IMG/VR virus record: IMGVR_UViG_3300048121_001678 | Coordinates: 233,165-297,164 of that record | Strand: one strand, 5' to 3' | Length of the DNA stretch: 64,000 nt | In this document: piece by piece, positions 142 through 60,291 of the stretch | Position numbering within the stretch: position 1 is the stretch's first letter | How the letters are laid out: each line of letters begins with the position of its first letter | Notes under the pieces: model-generated | What the model saw: only the letters and a program-made list of their open reading frames with translations | What the model was told of the DNA's origin: nothing | The model's database searches: none | Program-made: the position numbers and the translations under genes

Positions 142-1209
142 TTAATCAAATGCTGGACAAAGTGTTTGACTTGGTCTACGTCGTTTAGATTTGTTTTTGG
201 ATTTTTTAATCCATGTATATAATGGTATTTTAATAGATATACCTTTAGTTCTTCTCTGGAATGTAACTTTATATAGTTTGGTTGTCAGTGTTTCTTCACC
301 CCCGTCTTTCCCTGGTGATGGAGGTTTATTTAGAACAACCTGAATATCAACATTTAAATATTTATAAGGTTCATATTTAGACTTATCAGAGCCTTTTTTC
401 CATTCAGGTCCTGATGTTCCATCACCATTTTGACCTTTATAGTTTTGAGTGATTACCGTATTTGAATCAGTTATAACACCTAAGGAGTTTAATTGAGATT
501 CTATATATTTTAATGCACTATCATTCCTTAATTTAGATAACTCCTTAAACGTATATGTTTTACCGTCAGGAGATTGAGTATTAGGTATTCTCGATGCCGA
601 AGTATCAACATTTAAATTTTTTAAGTACATTTTAGGTTTACCCTCTAAGCTCTTCATTGATTCTAATTGAGTTTTAATTGGGTCAATAACATCTTTTTTA
701 AATTGCTCTTTAAAATATGGTGTAGTTTCATAGTAATTATCGACAAAGAAATCTGAAGAAGGTGAATTATTCGCTGGAAAAACTACTGGTAACGAAGGAT
801 ACACTTTAGGTTCTCCAGGTACTTTTTCAGTTCTTTCACCCGCATTACTACAGTACACTCTATTCCATTTATTTTCCGGATAAGTTTCGTTGAATGACTC
901 AACCGTTGCCACCGCTAAATCTATTTGATTTTTCTTAATTTCTTCCCACTTAGTTCGACTTGTTTTTGTCATCAGAGAAACCATTACATTCGCCTCAGGT
1001 CCGTTAACAAACTCTTCCCATTGTTCTTCTGAAAGTTCTGGTTGTACATTACCTTGTTTTAATGTTTTTTTATCTTTAGTTTTGGATTTAATAATTTGAA
1101 CACGCTTAGTTCCCACACGTCTCAATTGTTCATTATACTCTTGTTCTTCAAGTACCTTTCTAACCATATTCTCCAAATCAGATTCAGATATTTTTACTAC
1201 TTTCCTCAT
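142..1209 (-). CDS. Putative internal virion protein; leader motif plus possible OmpA-like domain
   Basis: Start moved to MRKVVKISESDLENMVRKVLEEQ (1209) because the longer ORF overlaps the tmRNA; TATTTAT at 1230-1236; LSKLRNDSALKYIESQL resembles the OmpA_C LSxxRA motif. Confidence 0.65.
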   Translation of the reverse strand: MRKVVKISESDLENMVRKVLEEQEYNEQLRRVGTKRVQIIKSKTKDKKTLKQGNVQPELSEEQWEEFVNGPEANVMVSLMTKTSRTKWEEIKKNQIDLAVATVESFNETYPENKWNRVYCSNAGERTEKVPGEPKVYPSLPVVFPANNSPSSDFFVDNYYETTPYFKEQFKKDVIDPIKTQLESMKSLEGKPKMYLKNLNVDTSASRIPNTQSPDGKTYTFKELSKLRNDSALKYIESQLNSLGVITDSNTVITQNYKGQNGDGTSGPEWKKGSDKSKYEPYKYLNVDIQVVLNKPPSPGKDGGEETLTTKLYKVTFQRRTKGISIKIPLYTWIKKSKNKSKRRRPSQTLCPAFD

Positions 1210-1237
1210 AATGCTACGTTTTATTAATGATAAATAG

Positions 1238-1294
1238 TTTGTTATTAGAAAAAAAGTATTTATATTTGTACTCAGAAACAAAAGTTCTTTGAAA
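1238..1294 (+). promoter_or_regulatory. Bacteroidota-type promoter and boxA-like element for tmRNA
   Basis: TTTG (1238-1241), 19-nt spacer, TATATTTG (1261-1268), then GTTCTTTGAAA (1284-1294). Confidence 0.65.
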
Positions 1295-1298
1295 TTAT

Positions 1299-1688
1299 GG
1301 GGGTGAATGGAATTGATTGGCAGGGTCAGTTGCACGGGGCACGTAGTGAGATGTTATCTATCACTTTAATCTATGATGGCAATTTTGTAATCGGCGAAAC
1401 TTTCGCAAAACTTCAGGCAGTAGGTCTCCTACGTACTGAAGAAGTAGCTGTAGCGTAAGACGTTAACAGTGAATCGGGTCGGTCAGGACATGTACCTATG
1501 AACAGAAGTCCGTTGTTGTGGTGGAAAAACGATTAAACCCTAAATTGAGTCGTACATCTATTGGTGATAGAGGATGTAAAAATTCAATCACATATTTCGG
1601 AACATTGTGAACTAATGTTGACCTAAACGTGTAGTCCTTTGTAGGTGGACTGAACAAGACGCGGGTTCGAATCCCGCCACCTCCACCA
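1299..1688 (+). ncRNA. ssrA: tmRNA; tag ORF 1393-1458 encodes GETFAKLQAVGLLRTEEVAVA*
   Basis: 5' GGGGGTG pairs with 3' CACCTCC-A-CCA with a G3.U70 alanine determinant; T-arm GCGGG-TTCGAAT-CCCGC; 390 nt; resume context gtaatc-GGC. Confidence 0.93.
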
Positions 1689-1696
1689 AAGCTAAG

Positions 1697-1730
1697 GTCC
1701 AATAGAGTTTATCTATTGGACTTTTTTTTT
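1697..1730 (+). terminator. Intrinsic terminator after tmRNA
   Basis: 10-bp stem gtccaataga/tctattggac followed by T9. Confidence 0.8.
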
Positions 1731-1761
1731 ATAAACTATATGTTATTACAAAACAAAACTT

Positions 1762-2019
1762 ATGAAATTACCTATAATTAAAAAGATTGTAGAATCAGGT
1801 GAATTTGATGAGGATTACTTAGATGAGACAATTGAAGTTCTTCTTTGTATTTCAGAATCAAGAGGACTTAAAGATGAGGAAATGGATGTCATCGGTGAAC
1901 TTATCTCAAATATCTCAGGAGCCCAAGAGGTGATGAAAGATATAAAAGACGGTACATCACAACGTGATGCACTGAACGGTTTCATGAAACGAGTTACTAA
2001 TAGTGTAACGTTTAATTAA
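1762..2019 (+). CDS. Small acidic helical protein resembling a conserved Bacteroidota family (DUF6952-like)
   Basis: MKLPIIK..DEEMDVIGELISN..ALNGFMKRV pattern; family recalled from memory. Confidence 0.6.
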   Translation: MKLPIIKKIVESGEFDEDYLDETIEVLLCISESRGLKDEEMDVIGELISNISGAQEVMKDIKDGTSQRDALNGFMKRVTNSVTFN

Positions 2020-2276
2020 ATCTTTAACCATGTGTATCCACCAATACCATCGTCAAGTAATTTATAGGCGTCACCAGTATAGTCATCAGGTATCACCGCC
2101 GATTCTAAACCGGTAAGATTTACTAATTCAAAACCATCGGAGGTTCCCCATCCTTCTTGTGAACCTGAGAATTCATTTGCGGACACTGATATTAATTCTG
2201 TTTCGGTGATACTAATAACACCTGTAGTGGTCACAAATCTCACAACTTTTGATGTTGAATTTCTACAAACGTACAT
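2016..2276 (-). CDS. Hypothetical protein
   Basis: 86 aa ORF with TATTTAT at 2306-2312. Confidence 0.6.
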   Translation of the reverse strand: MYVCRNSTSKVVRFVTTTGVISITETELISVSANEFSGSQEGWGTSDGFELVNLTGLESAVIPDDYTGDAYKLLDDGIGGYTWLKI

Positions 2277-2416
2277 AATTTATATTTTTTTGTTTTTATT
2301 TAACAATAAATAGATATTACTCTTGATTATTCCAATAATAATGTTGTGGGTTTATAAAATTTGCAGTATATTTGTATTGTTAATAAGGACATAAACCACG
2401 AAAAAAAAGAAAAAAC

Positions 2417-3166
2417 ATGACAGTAACAGGAATCAACATCACAGAAAAAGTAAGAGACTACAAAGGAAACAATTCATTCATCAAGAACCTGAAGCCAGGT
2501 CTTTCAAAGTACGGGAGACTAACTCCTAAGCAATTCGCAGCTGCTGAGAAAATCATCTTAAACGAAGTACGTAGTTCTGAAGTGAAGGTTGAGGACCTAC
2601 CACAATCTATTCAAGATATCGTAAACTACGGTGGTGAGTTGAAGTTCGTAAAAGACATTCAGTCTAAATATAACAAATATCGTCGTCTTACTGAGAAGCA
2701 AGTATCTGCAGCGACTAAAGCAATCAGCCGTGAAAAAGCTAAAAAGTCACAGAAAGAAATCAATGTTGACATCGTTGGTAACACTATCAAACTTGGACGT
2801 AACATCGCTTTGGATATCAAAGACACATACAACTTAGAGTTCCAACCAATCTTAGTTGACGTTACTAAAGTCATGACAGTATCTGAAAAGGCAGTGAAGA
2901 TAGAGGCTAAACTAACAAAAGAAAACGGTGGTATCTGTCGTTGTTGTGGTAGAACACTTACTGATGATATGTCTAAAATGACAGGTATCGGTCCTGTATG
3001 TTCACGTAACGTGGGGGTTAAACACCCGACATCTCGAGAAGACCTACCTAAGTACCAACAGATGATTTCTGACAAAATCGACGAAATAGGAACATTTGAG
3101 TTCTGGATTCCAAAAAGAGGAATCGTCGAGTGGAACGGTCACGGAGCAGTATTATTAAAGCTCTAA
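2417..3166 (+). CDS. DUF6011-like zinc-ribbon protein
   Basis: CRCCGRTLTD..S..TGIGPVC motif; host-type promoter TATATTTG at 2367-2374; terminator at about 3173-3200. Confidence 0.75.
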   Translation: MTVTGINITEKVRDYKGNNSFIKNLKPGLSKYGRLTPKQFAAAEKIILNEVRSSEVKVEDLPQSIQDIVNYGGELKFVKDIQSKYNKYRRLTEKQVSAATKAISREKAKKSQKEINVDIVGNTIKLGRNIALDIKDTYNLEFQPILVDVTKVMTVSEKAVKIEAKLTKENGGICRCCGRTLTDDMSKMTGIGPVCSRNVGVKHPTSREDLPKYQQMISDKIDEIGTFEFWIPKRGIVEWNGHGAVLLKL

Positions 3167-3280
3167 TATTAACGGAGGGGGAAACCCCTCCTTTTTTTTT
3201 TATTGTTTTTTTAATAGATGGGCCGAGTTAACCTACTAAGGTACTATTAAAAATTTTAAATTCCTAATAAAATTTTACTT

Positions 3281-4045
3281 TTATAACCCCTTATCTCTTT
3301 TAATGTCATCATCGGTTGGTTCGGTTAATGAGTTACCCAAATCCTGAAATCTAGACTGACCTGTATAATCAATTTTAGTTGCAATTGCAGAAATATTAGA
3401 AATAAACATCTCTCTTATATCTGAACGGGGGTGAGAGGAAATTACTGATGATAAAAATTCATCACTAACAATTACATTCTTTTTAAGTTTTGGTAAGTGC
3501 TGTTCAACTAATTTTTCAATACCGGCTCTTTTAATAATGTAAGTATGTGTGTTATAAAATGCAGATGGTCTAATAAAGTGTTTCTTACCAATCCTTTTAC
3601 TATCAATTAGTTTTTTAAAAATTCTGTGTAATGAATTGTGTGACATTAAGCAAAGGTCCCATTCGTAGTCATCCATTTCGTCGAATATTGACCAATCTAT
3701 TGGTATACGAGGGATAAAATCATCTTCTAAAATCATAATAGTATTGTAACCATTCTTATGAGCGTCCTCCCAACACCGAGTATGTGAAATCATTCCACCC
3801 GCTTCACCATATGTTGTCGGTCTATTCCAAAAATCATACTTAATTTTACTCTCAGGTAGTTCCCATCCTTTATACAGGGTATATTCATCACCTTCCTCTT
3901 TAATTAACCTTTTTCCCACATAACCCTCAAACACTTCAACATCACAACCAAATGGTAATGGTAACATCTCAGCTCTCTGAAGTAACTCCTCAATATATTC
4001 TTTTCTGTGGTCAATAGAAATAATGTAGACTTTATCGATATACAT
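3281..4045 (-). CDS. Glycosyltransferase family 25
   Basis: VYIISI..RK, GEAGGMISH..CW, ILEDD motifs. Confidence 0.85.
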   Translation of the reverse strand: MYIDKVYIISIDHRKEYIEELLQRAEMLPLPFGCDVEVFEGYVGKRLIKEEGDEYTLYKGWELPESKIKYDFWNRPTTYGEAGGMISHTRCWEDAHKNGYNTIMILEDDFIPRIPIDWSIFDEMDDYEWDLCLMSHNSLHRIFKKLIDSKRIGKKHFIRPSAFYNTHTYIIKRAGIEKLVEQHLPKLKKNVIVSDEFLSSVISSHPRSDIREMFISNISAIATKIDYTGQSRFQDLGNSLTEPTDDDIKRDKGL

Positions 4046-4133
4046 AAATTACTTTTTTAATTAAAAATAGTATTTGTTATAAAATAATAAACCCACCTAA
4101 GAGGTGGGTTCACTATGTGTCGTATTTAGTGTC

Positions 4134-5015
4134 TTATAAGGACATTAACATGTCCAATAACTCTTGTTGTGGGAACATATCCACTTTATCTTTACGGGTG
4201 TTTGTGTGTGTCCACAAACCTTTAACCTTACCGTAGTATGCGTCCTCATTCCATTCGAATGCATCTGCACCTTTATCTTTAATCAATGATGGTAATCCTG
4301 CTCTAATATCAATACCGTCTCTATCACCAATCCATAATATCCACTTTCTTAACGCTTCAATTTGTTCGTCAGAATAACGATGCCACGTTTTGTGACCTCT
4401 AAATTCTTTATCAAGTGTAACTATTTGTGACTCAGCAACAGATGTTCCAGCATATGTTTTACCATTCTTAATCCATCCAAAGTTACAAACCTCAATGGCA
4501 ACTGAGTTAACGTGCATCTTTTGTGAACCATTTTTACCTAAGTGCCAACCGTAATTACCTTCAGGGAAAGCTTGTACCATTACACCGTCATATGTGTCAT
4601 CATTACCCTTTACTGATTGACCACCCAGTACAAATTCCGTGGCAACTGCACCTCTACTGTCTCTACCCCACGAATCAATACATTTATAAGGATTATTCCA
4701 ACCTGCAGTGTGGTGTAAAAATAACCATTCAGGTTTAATTGGACCTTCTTTATATTCACCCTTAGGTAAAAAATGTTGGTTTATCATCAAACCATTATCA
4801 GTGGTATAAGACTGTTCAGAATTATCTGTAGTTGCTAGACCCATTGCGTCCCAAGTTTTTGGACCTACTATCCCGTCAGAAACCAAACCATTATCCATTT
4901 GCCATTTTTTAACAGTTAACTCTGTACCTTTACCAAAAATACCATCGGTAGTTATATTGAAGAATTCTTGTAGAGTTTTCACTTCTTTACCTCTTGAACC
5001 TATTTTTAAAATCAT
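4134..5015 (-). CDS. Endolysin: peptidoglycan-binding domain plus N-acetylmuramoyl-L-alanine amidase (Amidase_2)
   Basis: LKIGSRG.EVKTLQ..DGIFG.GT..DGIVGPKTW; LHHTAG, WH.G, H(T)N..K.D zinc ligands. Confidence 0.88.
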   Translation of the reverse strand: MILKIGSRGKEVKTLQEFFNITTDGIFGKGTELTVKKWQMDNGLVSDGIVGPKTWDAMGLATTDNSEQSYTTDNGLMINQHFLPKGEYKEGPIKPEWLFLHHTAGWNNPYKCIDSWGRDSRGAVATEFVLGGQSVKGNDDTYDGVMVQAFPEGNYGWHLGKNGSQKMHVNSVAIEVCNFGWIKNGKTYAGTSVAESQIVTLDKEFRGHKTWHRYSDEQIEALRKWILWIGDRDGIDIRAGLPSLIKDKGADAFEWNEDAYYGKVKGLWTHTNTRKDKVDMFPQQELLDMLMSL

Positions 5016-5107
5016 ATTATATTATTTAAAAGTTTATTTACCATAAATATATCTTTGATTATGAAATTTATTATCTTTACCGTTATATGGTTATCAAATT
5101 AAATTAA

Positions 5108-5599
5108 ATGAATGTAGTATTAGTCCTAAACTCAGACTTTACACCACACAACGTAACAACATTACGAAGAGGTTTTGTATTAGTGGAAAAAGGTAAAGCT
5201 GAGATATTGAAAAAAGGTGATGATATAATAACAACATCAGGTAACTTTGTTAGACCCTTAGTTATTCGATTAGTTAATTATGTTAGATATCGAGCAAGGA
5301 ACTTAGGTGTGAACCGTAAACGACTATTTAAAAGAGATAGATACCAATGTGGTTATTGTGGTTCTAAAAATAATTTAACAATCGACCATATAATTCCTAA
5401 ATCCAGAGGGGGGTTAAATACTTGGGATAATTTGGTGACATCATGTTTTAGATGTAATAGTATTAAGGATAATAAAACACCTTCAGAAGCGGGAATGAGA
5501 TTAAGGATTAAACCTTATACACCCACATTATTCTCACGTGTTATCGACGATACTGTTGAGTCAATATGGGAATCATTTAAAAAAGAAGTGTTTAAATAA
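5108..5599 (+). CDS. HNH endonuclease (McrA-like)
   Basis: RDRYQCGYCG..LTIDHIIPKSRGG..WDNLVTSC..CN. Confidence 0.9.
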   Translation: MNVVLVLNSDFTPHNVTTLRRGFVLVEKGKAEILKKGDDIITTSGNFVRPLVIRLVNYVRYRARNLGVNRKRLFKRDRYQCGYCGSKNNLTIDHIIPKSRGGLNTWDNLVTSCFRCNSIKDNKTPSEAGMRLRIKPYTPTLFSRVIDDTVESIWESFKKEVFK

Positions 5600-5659
5600 A
5601 AAAAGGTGTTCTCACGAACACCTTCCTTAGATAAACTCACCTCCTTTCCTTTGGTTTGT

Positions 5660-6247: not shown

Positions 6248-6248
6248 A

Positions 6249-7640: not shown

Positions 7641-7647
7641 ATTATAC

Positions 7648-8817
7648 CTATTGTTCTTTTGATGTTATTTTTCCTTTTTCCAAAGTTACACTATAATCCT
7701 GTGGTCCTCTAACTTGGGCATTTTTACCATCCTGACTTATGTAAATTTTAAACTCATTATTAAATGTAGGTTCATCAATAGGATACATATTTATCAGATG
7801 TTCTCTCACATTTGATTGTGTCAATTCACCAATTTCTCCTGTTGCGTTTGAAAACATATCTTTAATCCATGCAATATCACCCCAATTATTGAACCTTGCC
7901 AATGTTGAATACCATAATAACGCACCCAGAGAAGGTCCAAGACTAAATCCACTAATAACGGTGAGTAGTTTTTTCCACATGGGTAGTTTTGACCACCATG
8001 ATGGATTGATTTCATTAACTCTTTTAAGTTCGGTCAATATATCTGGGTCAATTCTTCTAGAAGAAGAAATTGCGTCTGACATTAATTTATTATATTCAGT
8101 ATCTGAAATATCTTTTAGGAATGAACCTTTTTTTCTCGCATTTTTGATGAATTCTTTGAACGCTTTTTCATTTCTTGCAACCATTTCTTTTGTTGTTTTA
8201 GAAACAGCATCAGTAGGTATATTATCAACAACACTTGCACTCTTCAATAGGTCATCGACCGCATTATCTAAATTAGAAATAACGTTTTTATTTATAAAGT
8301 CACTATATTTTGAATCAAATTCAGACTTGAAGTCCCTAACTAATTTTGACTTAATTTCATCAGCACCTTCTAAGTATGGTAATTCATCTAATTTATCTGA
8401 ATAATATTTTATAATCTTATTACGTTGGTCCATAGTGATTTGACCCATGCTATCAACTTTTGCAAATATTTTTGAACCAATCTCATCGAAATTAGAACCA
8501 AAAAACTTACCTGATTTCATAAACTTAACTAAGTCATCCACATTATCAATTGTTGATTTTGATAATATTTCTAATACATCGTCAGAAAGGTTATCAATTC
8601 CATCTGTATCAATTCTTCTGATGACATCATCTATTTGATTATCTGTTAAGTTGAATAACTTAGTTAATGGGTCCAACAAATCATCTGATGTTTTTAGTAC
8701 TTTCTTTACTAAAGGTTTTGGTAACGGTATTGGTTGTTCAACTAATAATTTACTCGATAAACCCATAATTTCATGGATTCGATTAATATCTTCATTAATT
8801 ATTTTTTTATTTTTCAT
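7648..8817 (-). CDS. Putative internal virion protein with C-terminal hydrophobic segment
   Basis: MKNKKIINEDINRIHEIMG leader; TATTTAT at 8840-8846. Confidence 0.7.
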   Translation of the reverse strand: MKNKKIINEDINRIHEIMGLSSKLLVEQPIPLPKPLVKKVLKTSDDLLDPLTKLFNLTDNQIDDVIRRIDTDGIDNLSDDVLEILSKSTIDNVDDLVKFMKSGKFFGSNFDEIGSKIFAKVDSMGQITMDQRNKIIKYYSDKLDELPYLEGADEIKSKLVRDFKSEFDSKYSDFINKNVISNLDNAVDDLLKSASVVDNIPTDAVSKTTKEMVARNEKAFKEFIKNARKKGSFLKDISDTEYNKLMSDAISSSRRIDPDILTELKRVNEINPSWWSKLPMWKKLLTVISGFSLGPSLGALLWYSTLARFNNWGDIAWIKDMFSNATGEIGELTQSNVREHLINMYPIDEPTFNNEFKIYISQDGKNAQVRGPQDYSVTLEKGKITSKEQ

Positions 8818-8864
8818 ATAATTTCTTTAATTACTAATAATAAATAGTTTTATTTATTATAAAT

Positions 8865-10106
8865 TTATAAGTTTGCTAGTTCACTATCCATATTACTTAA
8901 TACTTTATTAATATATTCAACTTTTTCTTCGTCCGTGGTTTCAATCACCTTTCCAATCGAAATTTGTACACTTTCCTTAATTTCTGTTGATTCATTAACC
9001 ATTTGAGATAATAAATCTTTTTGAAACTTTTCTTTTTCTTTTTCAGATAGTTTAACGTATTCTTCAGGTAACTCAACTCTTCTGTAATCCAATCCTTTAA
9101 TTTCGACACCTAAAATTTTACCAATTTGCATAAAAGTGAGGAGTCCACCTCCTAACGCAGCTACTCTCCAAGTTGCTCTCCATGGGAGTAGACCAACTTT
9201 AGTAAAATATAATAACGCACCTATTAATTTCTTACCCGTATATTTTGACAAAGATTTTGAAATTAAACTACTTAGTTTCGAATATGCTTGGACATTTTTA
9301 CCTATCCAATCAGCATTCTTTTCAAGTTCCATACTAAGCTTTCTTTCCATTGGTGATAAATCTAAACCCTTTGATACTTTATTTAAAAAGGTTTTAAGTG
9401 CACCAGATGTGAACTTTTTTACAAAAGGAATTTTATTCAATAACATACCACCAGGTATAACTGCAAACGCAGCACCAATACCTGCCGATTCATAATCCTT
9501 CTCTTTAACATATAATGCGATATCCGCAGCTTCTAAAACACCGGCAATAGCAAGACCACCGATTCCACCTGTTGCCACAGTAACGATAAGTGCACCTATA
9601 GGTAATACCCAATGCCAAAAATCTTCAGGTAATGGAGGTGATGTTTGACGCTCTTCCCAATCTTCTAAATCTGATTTATAAACCTTCATTAATAGACCCT
9701 TACCTTTAATACCTTTACAAGATGTCCTATATTGGGAACAACTACATATTTTATTATCCTTACAAAGTCTTTTTAATCGTGGAGATGTGTACGTTACAAA
9801 GTAATCTAATTTATTCATCATCACCTTCTTGTCATATGATGACATATTTGATGAGTATACAATGTCTTGGTGAGATGGAGGACTAGGTTTATTTTTACCT
9901 GTGTAGTTTAACATTAATCCAGGTGGTATTGACTTTCCATCAGGCATCAAACCTAAATACTGAGGGTCAACTCTAGTGTTATCTGACTGCATAGTCCTAT
10001 CAGGAATATTAAACTGCTGTTCCTGAATATTCTCATTAAGGGTTTTAGACGAATCGTAATTCATCTTTAATAATATATCTTTTAATATTTGTTCATTATC
10101 TACCAT
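8865..10106 (-). CDS. Putative internal virion or membrane-inserting protein
   Basis: Leader ending TLNEN; Gly/Ala-rich hydrophobic hairpin WVLPIGALIVTVATGGIGGLAIAG. Confidence 0.7.
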   Translation of the reverse strand: MVDNEQILKDILLKMNYDSSKTLNENIQEQQFNIPDRTMQSDNTRVDPQYLGLMPDGKSIPPGLMLNYTGKNKPSPPSHQDIVYSSNMSSYDKKVMMNKLDYFVTYTSPRLKRLCKDNKICSCSQYRTSCKGIKGKGLLMKVYKSDLEDWEERQTSPPLPEDFWHWVLPIGALIVTVATGGIGGLAIAGVLEAADIALYVKEKDYESAGIGAAFAVIPGGMLLNKIPFVKKFTSGALKTFLNKVSKGLDLSPMERKLSMELEKNADWIGKNVQAYSKLSSLISKSLSKYTGKKLIGALLYFTKVGLLPWRATWRVAALGGGLLTFMQIGKILGVEIKGLDYRRVELPEEYVKLSEKEKEKFQKDLLSQMVNESTEIKESVQISIGKVIETTDEEKVEYINKVLSNMDSELANL

Positions 10107-10393
10107 AATGGGTTTCCTTTGCCTCTATTTATTCCTGAGTCCCATTTAGACGTACCGTCAATTGGATTGGCTTTACCTCTTGTTAATCCTGTTTCCCATG
10201 TTGTCATTGATGGTCCTGATGGTGCTGGTTCTCCATCATCTTGCTCATCAATTTCACCTTCAGTTTCATCATCAGGATAACAATCACATCCATCGTCATA
10301 ACCTTCAGGACCTTTATACATTGGACTATTAGGTTCTTCATCGATACCCATGACTTCCTTAATACGTGAAATATCTTCTTTTAATAACCCCAT
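10100..10393 (-). CDS. Small acidic protein with head-targeting-like leader
   Basis: MGLLKEDISRIKEVMG; TATTTAT at 10410-10416. Confidence 0.7.
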   Translation of the reverse strand: MGLLKEDISRIKEVMGIDEEPNSPMYKGPEGYDDGCDCYPDDETEGEIDEQDDGEPAPSGPSMTTWETGLTRGKANPIDGTSKWDSGINRGKGNPLW

Positions 10394-10453
10394 TAGGAAA
10401 CATTTCTATATAAATAGTTAGTTTTATTAAAAAATAGTTTGTATATTCGTTTT

Positions 10454-10711
10454 ATGAAGAACAAATATAACATTAATGAATCGGTTTATGATTGCAAAAC
10501 TAAAGAAGTGAAAACCATTAAGGATTTTGAATTTTTTGAATCTATGGTTTTATATTACTTTGATGGAGGTGGGGCATCTCCAGAGTCAAAATTATTATCA
10601 CCAATTTTCATGGAGTTTATGAATGTCGTAAACACGTCAATGGAAGAAAAAGAAAAAGAAATTGATAACGTATTAAAAAATATAACTAACGAACTAAACG
10701 AATTAGTCTAA
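10454..10711 (+). CDS. Hypothetical protein
   Basis: Likely start MKNKYNINES; coupled to the next gene (TAATG). Confidence 0.6.
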   Translation: MKNKYNINESVYDCKTKEVKTIKDFEFFESMVLYYFDGGGASPESKLLSPIFMEFMNVVNTSMEEKEKEIDNVLKNITNELNELV

Positions 10712-11217: not shown

Positions 11218-11240
11218 TAAAAGGAGGTGAAAACCTCCTT

Positions 11241-11693: not shown

Positions 11694-11707
11694 ACTAATA
11701 AATATCA

Positions 11708-12013: not shown

Positions 12014-12061
12014 TTCTATTTTCTAAAATTTGTTTTATCCTTTATATAAAATATATCAAAA

Positions 12062-13014: not shown

Positions 13015-13015
13015 T

Positions 13016-13241: not shown

Positions 13242-13778
13242 TTAGTTAAATTTATTAAACCGATTAAAGTTCTCTAAGATTGTATCTCTTTCGGTTTTGA
13301 ATGCTTCGTGGAGGTCCTCATCGATTTCCTCATACATTCCACATTGTTCTGAACATTCACCTTCTCTCATTTCTGAACCACATTGTTCACACATTTCTTT
13401 TTCGTCTAACTTGTGGTCGTGACCTTCACACTCACAATCTTCAACAGGACTATCACATGAAGGACAAGTTTCACCTTCACCCATAACCATCTCACCATCC
13501 TCAGGACCGTCAGATACAAAGTCATAAGCCGGTTCAACATTAGAAACGTCCATATCAGGAGCATCAATAACTGCTTGTTCCTGTAGGTTGTTATCGTACA
13601 CCTTAACTTCACCAGTATTAGTAATCTGAAGACCGTTTTTATCCTGTGCCAAATCCTCAACCGTCAACGGTGTTTGATTTGATGGAACATTCCCAGTGGC
13701 GTAACCATCATAGAAACTTCTATGTGTATTGAGGATAGATGCTCTTTCCTCGTCTGATATCATTGAATAACCTCTCAT
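13242..13778 (-). CDS. Acidic Cys-rich protein with head-targeting-like leader (scaffold-like)
   Basis: ISDEERASILNTH leader, CEQCG..EGEC.EQCG module; TATTTAT at 13794-13800. Confidence 0.7.
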   Translation of the reverse strand: MRGYSMISDEERASILNTHRSFYDGYATGNVPSNQTPLTVEDLAQDKNGLQITNTGEVKVYDNNLQEQAVIDAPDMDVSNVEPAYDFVSDGPEDGEMVMGEGETCPSCDSPVEDCECEGHDHKLDEKEMCEQCGSEMREGECSEQCGMYEEIDEDLHEAFKTERDTILENFNRFNKFN

Positions 13779-13849
13779 AATTGTATTTTTATTATAAATA
13801 GTATTTGAAAGTGAAATATCTTTTTATTATCTTTACAAAAAAGATTTAT

Positions 13850-14551: not shown

Positions 14552-14552
14552 T

Positions 14553-15143: not shown

Positions 15144-15203
15144 AATAATTTATTGTTTTAGTATAAATACTATTAATTATATATTTATTCTAAAAGAGTT
15201 TAC

Positions 15204-15878
15204 ATGCAATACATAATAACAGAAGAACAACATCAATTAATCCTTACAGAAGGTTTTAAAGATGCTGTAGAAAATCGTTTAAAAAATGCGTACAACTTTA
15301 CTAAAGATATCATAGCTAAAACTAAAGAACAATTTGGTAATAGTTTTAGATTTGCACTTACATATGGTGCCGGTATCGGAGCATTGGCACCCGCAATTGA
15401 TGAATACTTAAGAGGTTCATTTAGTGGATTAGACGACTCCCAAATTGCAAGTCTTATAATGTCAGCAATCTCTATAGTGTTTTTCAATACTAAGGATTAT
15501 TTGGACATATATAAAAAAATGAAAAAAGATGGTCTTATAGATGAATTAGGGTCAGCAGTATCATTCACTGAAAAATTAAAGTCTCGCGTATCAAAAATTT
15601 TAGACGTTTTAGGTATCGCCACTTATCAAGCATTGGATGTCGTTTCATTTTCGTTCTTATTACCTATTTTACCAGCAATTATTAAAATGTTAAGTGACAC
15701 AGATTTAGATATGGTGGCACTTAAAGGTTTACTTAATTCTTCGTTTATTACTGTAAGTGCAATAACCCTTCAAAAGATTATCGGGAAATTAAGCGAAAAA
15801 ATTTCACCCAAAAACTCTTCTGATGATGTAAGTGAACCTGAGGGTGAATTCCAATCTCCTGAGTCAGATATTGTTTAA
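15204..15878 (+). CDS. Hydrophobic protein with head-targeting-like leader
   Basis: MQYIITEEQHQLILTEG; TATTTAT at 15182-15188; several hydrophobic helices. Confidence 0.7.
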   Translation: MQYIITEEQHQLILTEGFKDAVENRLKNAYNFTKDIIAKTKEQFGNSFRFALTYGAGIGALAPAIDEYLRGSFSGLDDSQIASLIMSAISIVFFNTKDYLDIYKKMKKDGLIDELGSAVSFTEKLKSRVSKILDVLGIATYQALDVVSFSFLLPILPAIIKMLSDTDLDMVALKGLLNSSFITVSAITLQKIIGKLSEKISPKNSSDDVSEPEGEFQSPESDIV

Positions 15879-49893: not shown

Positions 49894-49949
49894 TAAAATT
49901 ATATTTGTTATTATAAATATACGAATATTTATAACTAAACAGTATAGTC

Positions 49950-50549
49950 ATGTCAGAATTAAAAAGAATAAAAGAAATAATGAACATACAAGAAGATATG
50001 AAAGTTAGGACTGCACCAATACCAACTAAAGGGTTAGTAAAGGTTATAGAATTTGTATTAAACCAATATGAAATAGATGTTAATTTTTCAACAATAGAGC
50101 CAGATGTTAATATTATAGACACCATACTAAGTAATTTAAAATTAATAGGTTCTAAAAACCTTGGTTGGGAAAGCGCTGACTATATTTATGCTTTTATAAA
50201 AGAGAATGGCTCTCTTTTAAATGACTTGAACTTTAATCATGAAGATTATATGATACCACAAAAAAAAATGTTTAAATGGTCCGGAATTGAGGAGTATACC
50301 GCTTATCATCAAGATACATGGACAGGTAAAGAAGAGGGGTATTCTAAAGATTTTTTAGAATATAGTTTTGACAGTGGTGAATTTGACATCACTGTGGGTA
50401 GTGTAGAGACTGAAGACATGTTAGACACATTCGATACTCGTACTTTTTTAGATAGTATCGAAGAAGTCCCGATGAATGAACGGATTAATAGTGGAAATGC
50501 ATCAATTATCGAAGAATTAAAGAAAATTAACTCAATAATCTTACTTTAA
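49950..50549 (+). CDS. Protein with head-targeting-like leader
   Basis: MSELKRIKEIMNIQED; TATTTAT at 49926-49932. Confidence 0.7.
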   Translation: MSELKRIKEIMNIQEDMKVRTAPIPTKGLVKVIEFVLNQYEIDVNFSTIEPDVNIIDTILSNLKLIGSKNLGWESADYIYAFIKENGSLLNDLNFNHEDYMIPQKKMFKWSGIEEYTAYHQDTWTGKEEGYSKDFLEYSFDSGEFDITVGSVETEDMLDTFDTRTFLDSIEEVPMNERINSGNASIIEELKKINSIILL

Positions 50550-53089: not shown

Positions 53090-53479
53090 TTATTTCTTAG
53101 TTAGTGTTAAATCAACTAAAGGACTTTTAGTCTCTATTTTATTTTTATTATTTTTTATAGAATTGATGATATAGGTTAATTTTTTATAGGGTAATTCAAA
53201 GGTTTTACCTGTATTATCTGTAATGTAATATTTCCCATCCTTTTTATTTTTATAAATATATTTAACTCCCACAGGTCCATCATAAAGCGCGGTGTCAACC
53301 GTAACTGAATATTTATTTGTTATATTTTTATACTTAGTAAGGATTGGACCACCATGTTTAGAGTTAGCTGGTGATAGAGTCACACCATGTAATGTTATCG
53401 TTTCATTAAGGTTTTCGGTAACGATTCTTTTGATAAGGCTTTTTAATTCCGATTCAGTTAACTTAATAATTTTTTTCAT
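53090..53479 (-). CDS. Small protein with head-targeting-like leader
   Basis: MKKIIKLTESELKSLIKRIVTENLNE; TATTTAT at 53498-53504. Confidence 0.7.
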   Translation of the reverse strand: MKKIIKLTESELKSLIKRIVTENLNETITLHGVTLSPANSKHGGPILTKYKNITNKYSVTVDTALYDGPVGVKYIYKNKKDGKYYITDNTGKTFELPYKKLTYIINSIKNNKNKIETKSPLVDLTLTKK

Positions 53480-53552
53480 AGTCACATGTTTTTATTAATA
53501 AATATATCAGTATTAAAAACCCCCACATTTCTGTGAGGGTTTAAATACAATT

Positions 53553-54365: not shown

Positions 54366-55517
54366 TTAACCTTTACGTGTATCCCTAATTGGTTTATCGT
54401 AATGAATTACCTTTTTACCACCACTACTATAATCCACTTTATAGTTTTTGTTATGGAATACTATAATATCTTTACCGTTTGAATAAAGAATATAATTTAG
54501 GCCTGACGATACTTTATTTTTGTACCAATCTTTCATTCCATATGTGGAAACACTAAATGTACCGTTATCTAGTTCTTCTATTTTACTTAATGGTTTTATT
54601 TGGTAACCCTTACCTTTAATAGAAACATCTATAGAGTCAATACGGTCTCTAATTGAACCTAAACAATATTGAATAATATCTTCATCCTTTAATGAGGGAC
54701 TTAATTCCTTAATCCTATCAATAACTTTTGATTCTGTTTCCCACCCACTTTCGAATGACCTTCGGTTTCTTTTAACTAATGATTGTAGTAATTCACTATC
54801 CTTACCAAATAGCTCGTATCTATTATCGGTCAACCACTGTTTAAAACCACTTAGTGTGTTTGTCTCGTTTTCATCCTTATACTTATCTACTAATATTCTT
54901 ATAACACCTGGATTGGTATCAAAAAAGTTTAGTATTGACCATCTTTCACCTTCAATGGCTGGAAATATATCAATGACACCATCTAAGGTTTCACAACCTG
55001 GCTCCGAAATCCTTCCCCAATTATTGGGGTAAACGTCTTTTAATGTGTCCAGTATATGTTGAGGTATTCCTGATTTTTTTGTTTTTAATAAATTAACCGA
55101 TAAATCATTATCTACGGAACTTAAAGATGAAGACCCATCACTTGTTTTCATTAACGGTAATAACTTATCATAATATAGATTACTTAGTTTATTACCAAAA
55201 ACATAAGGAGTTTTACCGTCATAACGGATAACACTTGAATCAAATTCAAACTCACCATTTTTACCAATAAATAAAACTGTTCTCTCACCATCTTCAGGAT
55301 GTTCATATTCACTTTTACCGAAATCAGTACCGTTAAAAAATACAACACCAATATTATTGGGGTTTCCCTTTTTAGGTAGAACACCTAAACTAGTGTAATT
55401 ATATTCAGGATAATATTCGTCAAAGTCACTAACCTTATTAACTTCAGACATTAAACGGTTCTCTAATCTTTTATTAGATTCTTGTATATGTCTAATCTTA
55501 CTATAACTTCGATTCAT
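54366..55517 (-). CDS. Leader-bearing protein with possible C-terminal PD-(D/E)xK nuclease domain
   Basis: MNRSYSKIRHIQESN..LMSE leader; GWETE..D..DSIDV..GYQIKP; TATTTAT at 55537-55543. Confidence 0.6.
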   Translation of the reverse strand: MNRSYSKIRHIQESNKRLENRLMSEVNKVSDFDEYYPEYNYTSLGVLPKKGNPNNIGVVFFNGTDFGKSEYEHPEDGERTVLFIGKNGEFEFDSSVIRYDGKTPYVFGNKLSNLYYDKLLPLMKTSDGSSSLSSVDNDLSVNLLKTKKSGIPQHILDTLKDVYPNNWGRISEPGCETLDGVIDIFPAIEGERWSILNFFDTNPGVIRILVDKYKDENETNTLSGFKQWLTDNRYELFGKDSELLQSLVKRNRRSFESGWETESKVIDRIKELSPSLKDEDIIQYCLGSIRDRIDSIDVSIKGKGYQIKPLSKIEELDNGTFSVSTYGMKDWYKNKVSSGLNYILYSNGKDIIVFHNKNYKVDYSSGGKKVIHYDKPIRDTRKG

Positions 55518-55616
55518 ATTATTATTACTTTCATTTATAAATATAACTATTTACTCATTTAATTAAATAAAAAACCCCCACCTAATGGTGAGGGTTTATA
55601 TAATATTGATTTTTTA

Positions 55617-56087
55617 TTATCCTTGAGATTTGACTCTACTATCGTTATCGACATAACGACCAATCTCAGCCATCATCATATCAAAGAAGGCCTCATGATT
55701 TCTTTTATCTTTATTGAGTCTAAACATTAATTCTATACCGTTATCATCTAAACACTCTCCAATTTGTTTAACTAACTCACGTATATCATTATCATTTAAT
55801 GGTCCAAGTTTAATACCCTTTCTTGATGGTAATGTTTCAGCATTTTGTTCATCCAATTCTTCTTCTTTCATGGAACCACATTGTTCAACACATTCACCTT
55901 CTTTCAACATACCACCACATTGTTCACATGTTTCTTCTGATGCTTCGCTGATGAATGGTTTTGCGTCACCCGATTTTGTTTCCACCAATTTTTTGAAGTT
56001 ATCAATGGCTAATTTCATTCCACCTTCGTGTTGCTCACGAATTCTATTTTTTTCTTCTTCAGATATATTATTTAATAAATGTTTCAT
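55617..56087 (-). CDS. Acidic protein with head-targeting-like leader and CEQCG module
   Basis: MKHLLNNISEEEKNRIREQHEG; TATTTAT at 56102-56108. Confidence 0.7.
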   Translation of the reverse strand: MKHLLNNISEEEKNRIREQHEGGMKLAIDNFKKLVETKSGDAKPFISEASEETCEQCGGMLKEGECVEQCGSMKEEELDEQNAETLPSRKGIKLGPLNDNDIRELVKQIGECLDDNGIELMFRLNKDKRNHEAFFDMMMAEIGRYVDNDSRVKSQG

Positions 56088-56148
56088 AATAATGTTTTAT
56101 TATAAATACCAAAAAAAACAAAAAAGTGAAAAATACGTCATAGGTATT

Positions 56149-56455: not shown

Positions 56456-57100
56456 TTATTTTGTTAATATAGATAAAATTCCACCATAGTTTTCACCACC
56501 TTTAACCATACCATTGCTTACATTAACTTCATCTTCAATAGGTCCTCTAACTCTGTGTCTTAATAATAAATAAAAATTAGTTGGTTCACCATTTTTCATA
56601 ATTTGACCTTTATCACCAGAACCAGATAAAGTATAATTACCATTTGGTAAGTCAACTTTTGAAACCACATTATAACCATTTTTCTTTATATCCTCATACC
56701 TTGATAATACATTTCTTCCAATCGTATCAAAAAGTTCTTCCATTTTCTCCAATGGATATTCTTTACCCTTATAGTTGGACATTAAAGAAGGTATGATATC
56801 ACCTGACGCCCCTACATATACGTCTGAGAATTTTCCGTCAAACAGGTCTCTCACCTTAAATACTAATTGTTCACTACCGTTAGTATAGCTTATAGTGTCA
56901 ACAGTATCTGCGTATGTATGTTTACGTTTGAAACCGTAATTTGATGGCCAGTCAGGAAAATAATCACCCATTCGGTTCATAAGTCCACCAAGCATTTGAC
57001 GCTCATTCAAAGTTAAGGAATCTGGTCTATCTGCTGTTTCATTAACCAAACCCATCATCTGACGGATTTCGTTTACCTCTTTTAATATATTATTTTTCAT
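56456..57100 (-). CDS. Protein with head-targeting-like leader
   Basis: MKNNILKEVNEIRQMMGLVNE. Confidence 0.7.
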   Translation of the reverse strand: MKNNILKEVNEIRQMMGLVNETADRPDSLTLNERQMLGGLMNRMGDYFPDWPSNYGFKRKHTYADTVDTISYTNGSEQLVFKVRDLFDGKFSDVYVGASGDIIPSLMSNYKGKEYPLEKMEELFDTIGRNVLSRYEDIKKNGYNVVSKVDLPNGNYTLSGSGDKGQIMKNGEPTNFYLLLRHRVRGPIEDEVNVSNGMVKGGENYGGILSILTK

Positions 57101-57114: not shown

Positions 57115-57399
57115 TTAATTATCATATGTACTATCAGCTCCACCTGTAGAATATGATTTACCACCACCATACAGACTACCGTCTTTTTGTAATTTGTGGG
57201 TGTTACTATATATCCTTGTTACACCTTTTTCTTGTTTTAAAAATGGTCCTTTAACTTCAGTACCAGCTTGTACTTCTGTCAATTTATAAATTCCATCAGG
57301 GAAATCTTTAAGTGGTGCAGTACTTGTTAAACCTTCATTAATAACTCTATTAATGATTCTAACTAAATCGCTTTCTGTTAATGTTACGTTCTTTTTCAT
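57115..57399 (-). CDS. Small protein with head-targeting-like leader
   Basis: MKKNVTLTESDLVRIINRVINEG; TATTTAT at 57413-57419. Confidence 0.7.
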   Translation of the reverse strand: MKKNVTLTESDLVRIINRVINEGLTSTAPLKDFPDGIYKLTEVQAGTEVKGPFLKQEKGVTRIYSNTHKLQKDGSLYGGGKSYSTGGADSTYDN

Positions 57400-57525
57400 A
57401 CTTAAATTGTTTATAAATAAATATATTAAAAATAAAAAAAGGCGGTAGGGGGTCGGGGGATTTTTAGAGACACATTAATAAGACTTTCTTAAAAAGGGTT
57501 CCGGCATCAGAGAGATTATAATATA

Positions 57526-57573: not shown

Positions 57574-57686
57574 GACGGGTTGCGCGACGTTTTTTATATA
57601 TTGTTTAAGACACCCTTTTTTATTAGACCCTCTACTTTTCAAGGGTCACTACACCGCCCTTTCAGGGTGGGTGTTGTTCCAAATAC

Positions 57687-58775
57687 TTACGTCCAAATAT
57701 TTTTTACCCAATTAATAGGGGCTTTAGATTGTCTACTACAATATCCATTATTTAGGAAGTATGAATTACCCTTATCATCTCCAAATATTTCTTTTCTCTT
57801 ATAATGGTCAGTACGAATACTCTCATATTCCTGATGGGACATCTGGCAAGAATAATACCCCTGTTCGGCAGTGTTAGAAATATAGTTATAGATACCGGCT
57901 GCTCCGTGTACTGTATTACCCCCGAGTTCAGCAGAGGCGTGACACAACTGAAATAGGAAGTCAGCGCCATAACAGGCAGTAAAGAATATAGTGGTATCAT
58001 CACCGACAACATCTTTCAATTCAGATAAAAGTCCGTCCACAGCAAGACCTTTACCACGAGACATCAACAGGTTCTGTCCATCTCCGTGAGAACCGATAAC
58101 CACCTCTTTTAATGGGGTCTTCATATTACCTTTCTTTTTACGGACCACATTTATGGCATCTTCGGATGAGGTAAACACCCCTGTAACGATACCTAAAGAT
58201 TTCATAAGATAGGCTCCGATGGTCTCCCAACCTTTTTTCGGGAAGGTAAGATATAGAGAACTCGTCTTAAGTAGTCCTTCCTTCAATACGGATTCTTTTA
58301 TACTTCTTTTGTAGTCGGTCTTCTTCCAATATTTCGGAGGGTTGTCATAAAACAGTTTTGTATTTGTACTTCCCACTTCGATACTAAACTCATCGTAGGC
58401 CCCGACCATATCGTGAAAACCAATAACGATATCGGCAAAATCTGAAAAGATATTAAAACCATAATATCTTAGAAAGGATTTTTGTAGCCACGGGATAAGG
58501 ACTTTATCTGCGACCAAGTAATGGTCAATCGGCAAGTTCAATAGATGGTCTACATCGAAATAGACATCCAAGTGTATGTCTCCTGGCCCGACGTATTCAT
58601 AACCGTCAACGACCAATCGTTTCATCGTCACAGGATAGACCGATAACTTCATATCTTTTATGTGACCAATAAACCCTGAAAGGTCGGCAACCAAGTCCCC
58701 ATCAACAGGGGCGTTACCAATGAAGTTTTTCCAATTCTTATTAAAGTAATCTATTAGTGAATCAGTTACATTCAT
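57687..58775 (-). CDS. Two-domain protein with C-terminal caspase/CHAT-fold-like peptidase motifs
   Basis: VVIGSHGDG and IFFTACYGA His/Cys dyad after an internal SIKESVLKEG. Confidence 0.6.
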   Translation of the reverse strand: MNVTDSLIDYFNKNWKNFIGNAPVDGDLVADLSGFIGHIKDMKLSVYPVTMKRLVVDGYEYVGPGDIHLDVYFDVDHLLNLPIDHYLVADKVLIPWLQKSFLRYYGFNIFSDFADIVIGFHDMVGAYDEFSIEVGSTNTKLFYDNPPKYWKKTDYKRSIKESVLKEGLLKTSSLYLTFPKKGWETIGAYLMKSLGIVTGVFTSSEDAINVVRKKKGNMKTPLKEVVIGSHGDGQNLLMSRGKGLAVDGLLSELKDVVGDDTTIFFTACYGADFLFQLCHASAELGGNTVHGAAGIYNYISNTAEQGYYSCQMSHQEYESIRTDHYKRKEIFGDDKGNSYFLNNGYCSRQSKAPINWVKNIWT

Positions 58776-59293
58776 TCTTCTGTCTTGTTAATATGGTCTT
58801 GATACCTTTTCTCAGATTCTGATGATATCTTACCAATATGAAGACCAAACTTATTTCTAACTTCATTAAGTACTGTTCTTATCGTATATATTACACAAGT
58901 ATCATCATAACATTGTTCATCGTATTCGATTTCGTCATCATAGTCTTCAGGACATTCGAAGTTTGGGTCAATAGTATATCTATAGTTTAGTGACGAACTA
59001 CCACCAATACCGTTATACATTAAATCCATATTAACGGATGAGTCGGTTTTAAGAGGATATTTAACATCGACATATGTAATGTCCAAGTCACAAGGAGATT
59101 TAGAACTAAGTTTTTCTTTAATAAACCTTTCGACATTTTCTAATAACTCCCCTTGGGGGATATTAAGATATTCCTCAACAGTTTCCACATACTCATCGAA
59201 TGTTCGGAAGTTACGACCAATATACTTGGTGGTATACCAATCAATCTTACCGAGGGTATCCCATAGAATAAAAATTTGTTCCTTATTTACCAT
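58772..59293 (-). CDS. Hypothetical protein
   Basis: TATTTAT at 59298-59304. Confidence 0.65.
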   Translation of the reverse strand: MVNKEQIFILWDTLGKIDWYTTKYIGRNFRTFDEYVETVEEYLNIPQGELLENVERFIKEKLSSKSPCDLDITYVDVKYPLKTDSSVNMDLMYNGIGGSSSLNYRYTIDPNFECPEDYDDEIEYDEQCYDDTCVIYTIRTVLNEVRNKFGLHIGKISSESEKRYQDHINKTEE

Positions 59294-59321
59294 AATAATA
59301 AATATATACGTTGGAGGAAAC

Positions 59322-59693
59322 TTACAGGTTATTCACTACTCGTTCATAACTCGGCCCCATATCAATACTTTCACCACTCTTCCAATGTACATTACCCCCA
59401 TTAGATAAATTAAACTCAAAGAATAATATATCCCTATTGTCGTAATCCCAATAGTACATACCAAACCCCATATACTTCATGGTCGATATTAAATCCTCAA
59501 TATCTTCAGCACTGTATTTGTTGTCATCATTCAATAACTGTATACCAAACCTCTTCGGACTCTCAATGGTATAATCATTATATCCCAATATCTCAACAAC
59601 ATCATAAGGTCTATCAAAATAAAAAGAGATACACCCAAACTTTGGATGTACCTCACTAATAATTTCCTTAACCTTATTTAAGTCGTAATCCAT
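59322..59693 (-). CDS. Hypothetical protein
   Basis: 123 aa ORF. Confidence 0.6.
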   Translation of the reverse strand: MDYDLNKVKEIISEVHPKFGCISFYFDRPYDVVEILGYNDYTIESPKRFGIQLLNDDNKYSAEDIEDLISTMKYMGFGMYYWDYDNRDILFFEFNLSNGGNVHWKSGESIDMGPSYERVVNNL

Positions 59694-59916
59694 ATTACGC
59701 CTGTTCCTTATATATCTCAGTTCTAAACCTTATATACTTTGAACCAACACCTATACCCTTGTCGACTCCTCGTTTCCAAATCTCTTCCCTATCAGGGTAG
59801 ACCAAGATAAATCCCTTATCTATAAATCTAATACTATTCATTTCCTCCATATACATATAATAAAAAAACCTCCTACAAAGTAAAAGGTCATTATATACAA
59901 AATTTTCCCAAAATTT

Positions 59917-60291
59917 TTATTTCCCAATCTCTGAACGTAACTCAATATATCTCTTGTCTAACTTCGTACTGTAATAGTCCATAAGTGGTTTCCTAATCAT
60001 ATCATGATACAACTCATCGTTAGAACCCTCCTCATCATAATCACCAAATATACTCTGATGACCATTTTCAATCCCATCAGACATATTAAGTAACATTTCA
60101 TCTATAACAATCTTCTTGAATGCAAATAAACTACAGTTATATAAGATACTATTGGGATTGATGAAATCATTAGAAGTAGAATCCAAAGAATCGTAAAATT
60201 CATTATCCATACTTTGAATATCTATCCTCCTCCTAACATTAAGAGGTATACTCCTTAAAACTTCCTCCTTGATGATGTCGATTAATTTCAT
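59917..60291 (-). CDS. Protein with short (I/L)xE leader
   Basis: MKLIDIIKEEV; TATTTAT at 60296-60302. Confidence 0.65.
   Translation of the reverse strand: MKLIDIIKEEVLRSIPLNVRRRIDIQSMDNEFYDSLDSTSNDFINPNSILYNCSLFAFKKIVIDEMLLNMSDGIENGHQSIFGDYDEEGSNDELYHDMIRKPLMDYYSTKLDKRYIELRSEIGK

Follow-up and report, generated by a model that had tools for sequence, protein, structure and literature searches.

A 64,000-nt stretch of the virus genome IMGVR_UViG_3300048121_001678, hereafter the window, carries a set of genes whose otherwise unrelated products begin with a small number of recurrent N-terminal leaders. We consider it probable that these leaders are capsid-targeting propeptides of T4-type head assembly, which would be removed by the prohead protease. 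The window spans bases 233165-297164 of a 297,164-bp IMG/VR record (CheckV completeness 99%, G+C 34%), and the source is a 297-kb marine T4-like jumbo phage. DNA nearly identical to the source record was found in seawater and marine metagenomes only, all of them DNA sequencing runs, and a megablast search of a phage collection with window bases 1-20000 gave no match. The strongest arguments for our reading are the use of Glu and never Asp at the putative cut sites, a common hydrophobic-x-Glu (h-x-E) junction under non-homologous leaders, and a leader gene in the prohead-core slot, together with a conserved capsid cut site and a common late-promoter-like element. Genes were taken from a set of 343 crudely called ATG open reading frames (ORFs), two starts of which were set by hand, and are designated below by the position of their start in the window or, with the prefix g, in the genome. 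The relative used for comparison, G001, is 198.8 kb long with a median identity of 56%. Arrows within sequences mark known or predicted cuts.

Recurrent leaders were recognised on 10 of the 11 genes that a sequence-only reading of the window had named, and all eleven N-termini quoted by that reading were read correctly. The commonest leader, class 1, has the consensus MKKxIKLTESDLxxIxxxVIxE and occurs in the window on the genes starting at 1209, 53479 and 57399. Outside the window, it was found at genome starts 232598, 206549, 69165 (the true ATG) and 214589 (a GTG start). In leave-one-out six-frame scans of the whole genome, the left-out member ranked first in 6 of 7 cases, and class 1 matches began exactly at the initiator codon. 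Furthermore, the conserved residues of class 1 are specified by mixed synonymous codons, so that selection acts at the protein level. A signal at the level of RNA or codons was considered and rejected because of this synonymous variation and the existence of internal copies of the motif.

Class 2 comprises the genes 8817, 10393, 49950 and 57100, and class 3 the genes 56087 and 13778. Neither was significant in the leave-one-out scan using this genome alone, because there were too few seeds. Hidden Markov models (HMMs) seeded with leaders of other genomes only were used to rank the genes of this genome, and the genes proposed from the sequence came out at or near the top: class 2 at ranks 1-5 (E 1.5e-4 to 0.35), class 3 at ranks 1-3 (E 3e-7, 1e-3 and 0.18), and 15204, assigned to class 1b, at rank 2 for the IITESQ type. 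The class 3 motif reads ISxEE...I...H, with three residues in the gap rather than the two first described. Class 4 (IxRILKE or KILKEY), which is present in relatives, reached only E ~1 in this genome, and g58518 and g160720 are tentative for this reason.

Genome scans and cross-genome HMMs thereby confirmed the proposed leader classes for ten of the eleven genes. The remaining one, a gene beginning with an IIKEE-type N-terminus (59917..60291, minus strand), matched no class HMM and has its upstream TATTTAT at -11, off the -17 to -32 peak of this element; it is unsupported as a leader gene. Across the 297-kb genome we counted ~20 leader genes, including two further ones in the window, and the initial figure of about 15 proteins was an undercount. 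By BLASTP the bodies of the leader proteins are unrelated, as had been claimed, except for those of 56087 and 13778 (2e-7). Pfam and PHROGs gave no match for ten window leader proteins.

The tags are located at the very N-terminus of proteins that are unrelated in other respects and, with the exception of 13778, end in (I/L/V)xE at the body junction, a slight widening of the (I/L)xE ending put forward initially. The leaders are modular, and one type of body can follow different leader classes. Among fourteen homologues of the 53479 body, the leader is of class 1, of class 4 (MKELISKILKEY..) or of class 3 (..ISDLEKNRILSLHES..), and in each of them the conserved body starts directly after an invariant Glu (LNE↓S, INE↓S, IGE↓S); junctions under all three leader classes read (L/I)xE↓SIT. 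The 1209 body likewise has homologues with four or five types of leader, every one of which ends in h-x-E-Q. The best match to gene 57399 in G001 has only the leader region in common with it, its body being a PG_binding_1 domain, and is flanked by orthologues of the neighbours of the window gene. Furthermore, many leader genes have no orthologue in G001, whereas core assembly genes are 77-82% identical.

To assess the breadth of the family, we compared a profile of 20 class 1 leaders (A2) with 1.84 billion representative proteins. At E<=1e-3 there were 7,823 matching protein clusters, of which 54 reached E<=1e-10, and ~130 of the best 150 matches begin at residue 1-4. In an alignment of these best 150 matches, E9 and E22 are the sole invariant columns, occupied by Glu and never by Asp, and the residues at P3 of the two class 1 sites are L/I and I/L/V. 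Among the best 150, cell-wall domains are the only recurrent Pfam theme (PG_binding_1 in three proteins, OmpA and YkuD in one each), and none of the 150 is a replication or nucleotide-metabolism enzyme. All matched proteins are unnamed or 'hypothetical', neither Pfam nor PHROGs covers the leader, and a full-text literature search for the motif strings returned no relevant paper.

Relatives whose capsid protein is 72-84% identical commonly have the leader. The class 1 profile found nothing in T4, Flavobacterium phage immuto and Rhodothermus phage RM378, and two huge uncultured phages, at 40-45% capsid identity, gave marginal matches only (E 0.02 and 0.3); because of this distribution, the leader looks clade-specific. 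A tblastn search of GenBank phages with a 40-residue consensus-like leader gave no match.

Many proteins of the family contain a second or third, internal copy of the leader. Such internal copies, and C-terminal ones, would also fit leaders that are uncleaved helices docking many accessory proteins at one common site on the tail, baseplate or virion exterior, comparable to tailspikes with common N-terminal anchor modules, and in which the conserved Glu is structural. Peptidoglycan-binding and hydrolase cargo would also suit a tail tip, and late co-regulation would fit any part of the virion. However, docking gives no reason for an invariant Glu, never replaced by Asp, at two sites with I/L/V two residues before, for the recurrence of h-x-E at the body junction under non-homologous leaders, or for a leader gene in the prohead-core slot beside the protease. 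We therefore regard docking helices as an unlikely explanation.

The gp21-like protease that a propeptide requires was located in a head module outside the window, at genome 209.9-219.8 kb. This module holds a terminase, a T4-type portal, a 246-aa and a 149-aa protein, a 132-aa class 1 leader protein and a Peptidase_S77, followed by a 69-aa protein, a 471-aa very acidic protein and a Gp23-like capsid protein, in an order that matches T4 20-67-68-21-22-23. The protease (genome 213433-214152) matches PF03420 (1.9e-24) and phrog_207 (9e-44), and matches to Gp23 and Portal_T4 lie close by. It is 36% identical to T4 gp21 and retains the N-terminal LIE as well as H85 and S140, which we take to be the catalytic residues of gp21. 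The T4 gp23 cut site FLTE↓AEIGG aligns with HLINE↓AANAS in the capsid protein of this phage, which keeps an (I/L)xE↓A site at the T4 cut position. In all 69 distinct relatives LINEA is unchanged, and a variable stretch comes after it. Between portal and protease, in the gp67/gp68 slot, lies the 132-aa class 1 leader gene (genome 214191-214589), which bears the leader in G000, G001 and other relatives. A complex prediction for the protease and residues 1-40 of the 53479 protein scored 0.00, gave no verdict and was unused as evidence.

Another gene outside the window, g63040 (genome 62021-63040, minus strand; L006:2021-3040), encodes an acidic, putatively late protein of 339 aa with three leader-type helices, one N-terminal, one internal of class 1 and one C-terminal of class 2, all of which are conserved in G001. 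This protein may be a hub or core protein that binds leaders, or a protein that is cut into several pieces.

Both the leader gene in the gp67/68 slot and the many h-x-E sites of g63040 would also fit an alternative in which the propeptides are cleaved but the proteins are mainly disposable core or scaffold components like gp22, gp67 and gp68, degraded and expelled during maturation instead of being kept for delivery; T4 core proteins are indeed cut into fragments (PMC5694885). Conversely, many of the bodies are compact and folded and contain few internal sites, and the Hydrolase_2, YkuD, GNAT and OmpA-like bodies have no obvious use in a scaffold. Unlike core assembly genes, many leader genes also lack a G001 orthologue. 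Disposable core proteins are in our view a rather improbable account of the family as a whole.

The leader genes are also connected by a candidate late promoter element. The sequence-only reading had noted TATTTAT upstream of almost all of them, and for 9 of the 11 genes we found it to begin 21-29 nt before the start, the two others being 60291, already mentioned, and 57100, for which there is none. Counted where it starts 17-32 nt upstream of the start codon, TATTTAT was present at 46 of 343 genes and was the most enriched A/T heptamer at -32 to -17; in the same interval, its reverse complement was present at 12 genes and T4's TATAAAT at 6. It precedes 15 of the 20 leader genes and 31 of the 323 others (Fisher p 8e-11), and is also found before the portal, protease and giant structural genes. 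The recognisable enzymes of the window, namely two carbamoyltransferases, a cytidylyltransferase, a kinase, a phosphatase, ClpP and a histidine kinase, have neither leader nor TATTTAT, and an equal occurrence of leaders on early enzymes, which would have spoken against packaging, was thus not seen. Judging from this element, the leader genes are probably co-regulated with the structural genes.

AlphaFold2 models and domain matches gave a first view of the cargo. The 53479 protein was predicted to consist of a coil (residues 1-8), a helix (9-22), a second coil (23-27) and a body (28-128), with a mean pLDDT of 85, and the 1209 protein of a coil (1-8), a helix (9-26) and a folded body, with a mean pLDDT of 81. 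A Foldseek search of the PDB with the 1209 body returned OmpA/MotB/Pal domains for all of the top 50 matches (probability up to 0.99, with modest E values of ~2e-3), and a weak Atlas lead agrees with an OmpA-like body. The 53479 body had no significant match in the PDB by Foldseek, and the 8817 body no match in the Atlas. Among the other leader proteins, that of g19258 (class 3) combines PG_binding_1 with the cell-wall hydrolase domain Hydrolase_2, and that of g69165 contains EF-hands; GNAT and YkuD domains also occur in the leader family. By eye, the g206549 protein has a run of lysines right after IDE↓K, the predicted start of its mature form, and hydrophobic segments of a membrane-like kind are present in the 15204 and 8817 proteins. 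The recognisable cargo, mostly peptidoglycan-binding or cell-wall-active, points to a putative role in envelope entry rather than to cytoplasmic effectors.

The recurrence of peptidoglycan-binding, hydrolase and L,D-transpeptidase bodies behind putative late promoters could also mean that these are late envelope proteins for lysis or wall remodelling, with a leader that acts as a regulatory pro-segment or release signal unrelated to the capsid. However, the leader is charged, amphipathic and predicted to be helical, with no hydrophobic core, and because of these properties it is not a Sec, Tat or lipoprotein signal; ordinary signal peptides are present on other genes of the same phage. Furthermore, the canonical endolysin (4134-5015) has no leader, and such a role would not account for the poly-lysine, EF-hand and other bodies; we consider it improbable.

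The closest parallel to the proposed propeptides is found in T4. The T4 capsid targeting sequence is carried by IPI, IPII, IPIII and Alt (Mullaney and Black 1996; reviewed in PMC9026906, PMC3012670 and PMC5694885), and the internal proteins are diverse and have only this sequence in common (PMC3012670, PMC9026906). Ten residues suffice for targeting, and multi-site propeptides are cleared more easily (PMC3012670, PMC9026906, PMC5694885 for both), while Asp at P1 blocks processing (PMC9026906). In the T4 record, the substrates begin with MKTYQEFIAE↓A (IPII and IPIII), ..STITE↓A (IPI) and MELITE↓L (Alt), and the core proteins with MEGLIE↓A (gp67) and MLLIPE↓T (gp68), which places (L/I)xE 6-19 residues from the N-terminus.

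Like the T4 internal proteins, the proteins encoded here have a short N-terminal tag on unrelated bodies that ends in (L/I)xE. The S77 prohead protease family, the synteny of the head genes, a fast turnover of cargo genes and basic, DNA-binding-like cargo (the poly-lysine protein of g206549) are further points of likeness. In contrast, our leaders have no similarity to MKTYQEFIAE beyond (L/I)xE, measure ~22-30 residues instead of 10-19, and are predicted to form a helix with two or three putative sites. T4 has a single class of tag and 4-5 cargo genes, as against at least four or five interchangeable classes and ~20 cargo genes per genome here, and the cargo is rich in peptidoglycan-binding and membrane-like proteins. 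The small leader protein between portal and protease resembles gp67 and gp68 in its location and in its N-terminal (I/L)xE sites but has no detectable sequence similarity to them.

In the jumbo phages phiKZ, 201phi2-1 and SPN3US, many head and ejection proteins mature through cleavage behind Glu by a protease related to gp21 (PMC5694885, PMC10052503). Multi-site propeptides would be a feature in common with these phages, some of whose ejection proteins have transmembrane segments. However, their sites are (A/S/G)-x-E and most of their propeptides exceed 100 residues, whereas here P3 is I/L/V and leaders of 20-30 residues fall into common classes. A transferable N-terminal tag also loads diverse payloads into the contractile particle of PVC-type extracellular contractile injection systems; those tags are disordered, ~50-70 residues long, load the tube lumen and have no link to a capsid protease.

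The propeptide-targeting model would proceed as follows. A TATTTAT(A)-type late promoter would drive ~20 leader genes alongside the structural genes. A short basic extended segment and the 14-18-residue amphipathic helix after it would bind the assembling prohead core, made of acidic scaffold and core proteins, and the body would be enclosed as the gp23-like shell closes. The gp21-like serine protease would then cut after the Glu of (I/L/V)-x-E; for class 1 these cuts would follow E9 and E22, often with a further one at the body junction. The small leader fragments would be lost, and the mature cargo would stay in the head with the DNA and exit via the tail at infection. Leader classes distinct in sequence would do the same job and would be swapped between bodies by recombination. 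The natural exchange of leaders and bodies is compatible, if only indirectly, with a tag that would by itself package a foreign protein. The leaders, their N-terminal position, their modularity, the invariant Glu, the protease, the capsid site and the promoter element are read directly from the sequence; from these we infer core binding, cleavage, head residence and ejection. Functional delivery of the cargo at infection is less certain than cleavage. For the original proposal of a packaging tag for injected effectors, the points open to a check by sequence (the protease, the capsid site, the modularity, the apparent co-regulation and the lack of leaders on recognisable enzymes) came out favourably, and 'effector' is the weakest part, given the peptidoglycan-directed cargo.

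Several observations weigh against this model. The recognisable cargo is mostly directed at peptidoglycan, which is unusual as T4-type head proteins are expected to enter the cytoplasm. The extra internal and C-terminal leader copies, in many members and in g63040, suit a general docking helix equally well. No sequence similarity relates the leaders to the T4 targeting sequence, and a hydrophobic-x-Glu pattern is partly expected in any amphipathic N-capped helix. Finally, residues 1-45 of the 13778 protein and of its G001 orthologue contain no [ILV]xE, and K replaces E22 in g69165.

The window members of class 1 all lie on the minus strand. Gene 1209 (142..1209, 355 aa) has its leader at residues 1-28 (MRKVVKISESDLENMVRKVLEEQEYNEQ), ahead of the OmpA/MotB-like peptidoglycan-binding body fold, and a late-promoter-like TATTTAT (1230..1236) 27 nt upstream of its start. 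Gene 53479 (53090..53479, 129 aa) reads MKKIIKLTE↓SELKSLIKRIVTE↓NLNE↓TITLHG..., has a beta-rich body of unknown fold, and is preceded by TATTTAT (53498..53504) at 25 nt. Gene 57399 (57115..57399, 94 aa), whose leader is shared with the G001 best match on a different body, has two overlapping copies (57413..57423), 24 and 20 nt upstream. The class 2 gene 57100 (56456..57100, minus strand, 214 aa; ..LKEVNEIRQMMGLVNE↓T) begins 15 nt past the stop of 57115-57399, has no TATTTAT of its own and is probably co-transcribed with it.

Of the other class 2 genes, 8817 (7648..8817, minus strand, 389 aa; ..INEDINRIHEIMGLSSKLLVE↓Q) has its hydrophobic membrane-like segment near the C-terminus and TATTTAT (8840..8846) 29 nt upstream. 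Gene 10393 (10100..10393, minus strand, 97 aa; MGLLKEDISRIKEVMGIDE↓E) was the cross-genome HMM rank 1 (E 1.5e-4), keeps its leader in the G001 orthologue and has TATTTAT (10410..10416) 23 nt upstream. Gene 49950 (49950..50549, plus strand, 199 aa; MSELKRIKEIMNIQE↓D), also recognised by the cross-genome HMM, has the element (49926..49932) at 24 nt. One of the two newly added genes, 8865..10106 (minus strand, 413 aa; MVDNEQILKDILLKMNYDSSKTLNE↓N), is a probable class 2 variant with weaker support and no TATTTAT of its own. Its G001 orthologue starts MDNNNKIITEELKQIVVLMNYDRSKTLME↓Q, resembling class 2 variants among the 1209-body homologues, and a search for relatives of the protein found none.

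The class 3 gene 56087 (55617..56087, minus strand, 156 aa; MKHLLNNISE↓EEKNRIRE↓QHEGG) ranked first at E 3e-7, with TATTTAT at 56102-56108, and 13778 (13242..13778, minus strand, 178 aa; MRGYSMISDEERASILNTH..) has a CxxC-rich body akin to that of 55617-56087 and TATTTAT (13794..13800) 22 nt upstream. The class 1b gene 15204 (15204..15878, plus strand, 224 aa) reads MQYIITE↓EQHQLILTE↓G, is conserved, contains several hydrophobic membrane-like segments and has TATTTAT (15182..15188) 22 nt upstream; its family has 81 homologues, and T6, E7, Q9 and E16 are invariant in the 17 that were aligned. The second added gene, 54366..55517 (minus strand, 383 aa; MNRSYSKIRHIQE↓S..; TATTTAT 55537-55543), represents a further leader type. 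Its N-terminus (MNRSYSKIRHIQ) also heads P0329, a homologue of the 1209 body.

Outside the window, at genome 159866-160860 on the minus strand, a short ORF of 47 aa, which has a class 1b-like motif (NVIISEEQLERLIEK) at its end, overlaps the beginning of a gene for 284 aa with the N-terminus MIFRKILKEY. This overlap may represent two stacked leaders or a frameshifted start.

The first leader gene of the window adjoins a tmRNA gene (1299-1688, plus strand; Rfam RF00023, 82.5 bits) with an unusually long tag, GETFAKLQAVGLLRTEEVAVA. A ClpP gene (42563-43222, plus strand; PF00574, 2e-56) and, outside the window, a gene for a two-AAA ClpA/B/C-type ATPase (genome 226131-228146, plus strand) are both >80% identical in G001, and the three genes could form a phage-owned tagging and degradation system. 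Their presence would allow the leaders to be degradation or recognition tags for a phage Clp machine of ClpP and the ClpA/B/C-type ATPase. However, no known Clp degron has such a form, ClpP lies among non-structural genes without the late promoter element, there is no rationale for marking ~20 late proteins for destruction, and the h-x-E junction rule would stay unexplained. We consider such a function of the leaders highly improbable.

Other features of the window include a PAS-domain histidine kinase gene (45463-46713, minus strand) and an adjoining 145-aa gene (45018-45455, minus strand) that is response regulator-like by eye; the two would make up a two-component system carried by the phage. 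At 34612-35289 on the plus strand, five tRNA genes (Arg-tct, Met, Thr-tgt, Ser-tga and Tyr-gta) form a cluster. A block of sugar- or nucleotide-modifying enzyme genes (20356-27357, plus strand) encodes the cytidylyltransferase, an APS-kinase-like protein and the two carbamoyltransferases, and is free of leaders and TATTTAT. A TonB-dependent-receptor-like gene was noted by eye outside the window (genome 48150-50708, minus strand), and another with CarboxypepD_reg is annotated with these domains in a relative (L111:10912-13740); these genes are a hint of Bacteroidota hosts.

Taken further, the data raise the prospect, which we put forward tentatively, that marine jumbo T4-like phages, probably of Bacteroidota, load ~20 rapidly exchanged cargoes per genome by means of an undescribed family of interchangeable leaders (at least 7,800 clusters at 50% identity), and that the peptidoglycan binders and hydrolases act with membrane proteins as a joint envelope-crossing ejection apparatus. 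Such an apparatus is expected of podoviruses such as T7 and P22, not of a T4-type myovirus. Should the leaders prove to be targeting propeptides, a single short profile would be enough to recognise the packaged proteins of a whole clade of uncultured marine jumbo phages and would turn thousands of 'hypothetical' proteins into candidates for virion cargo. T4's use of one tag for many cargoes would have diversified into several interchangeable tags, and the natural catalogue of leader-cargo swaps would define the boundary of the tag. Given a cultured host, the tags could serve for loading proteins into capsids. Furthermore, cargo directed at peptidoglycan and membranes raises the question of how a T4-type myovirus crosses the Bacteroidota envelope.

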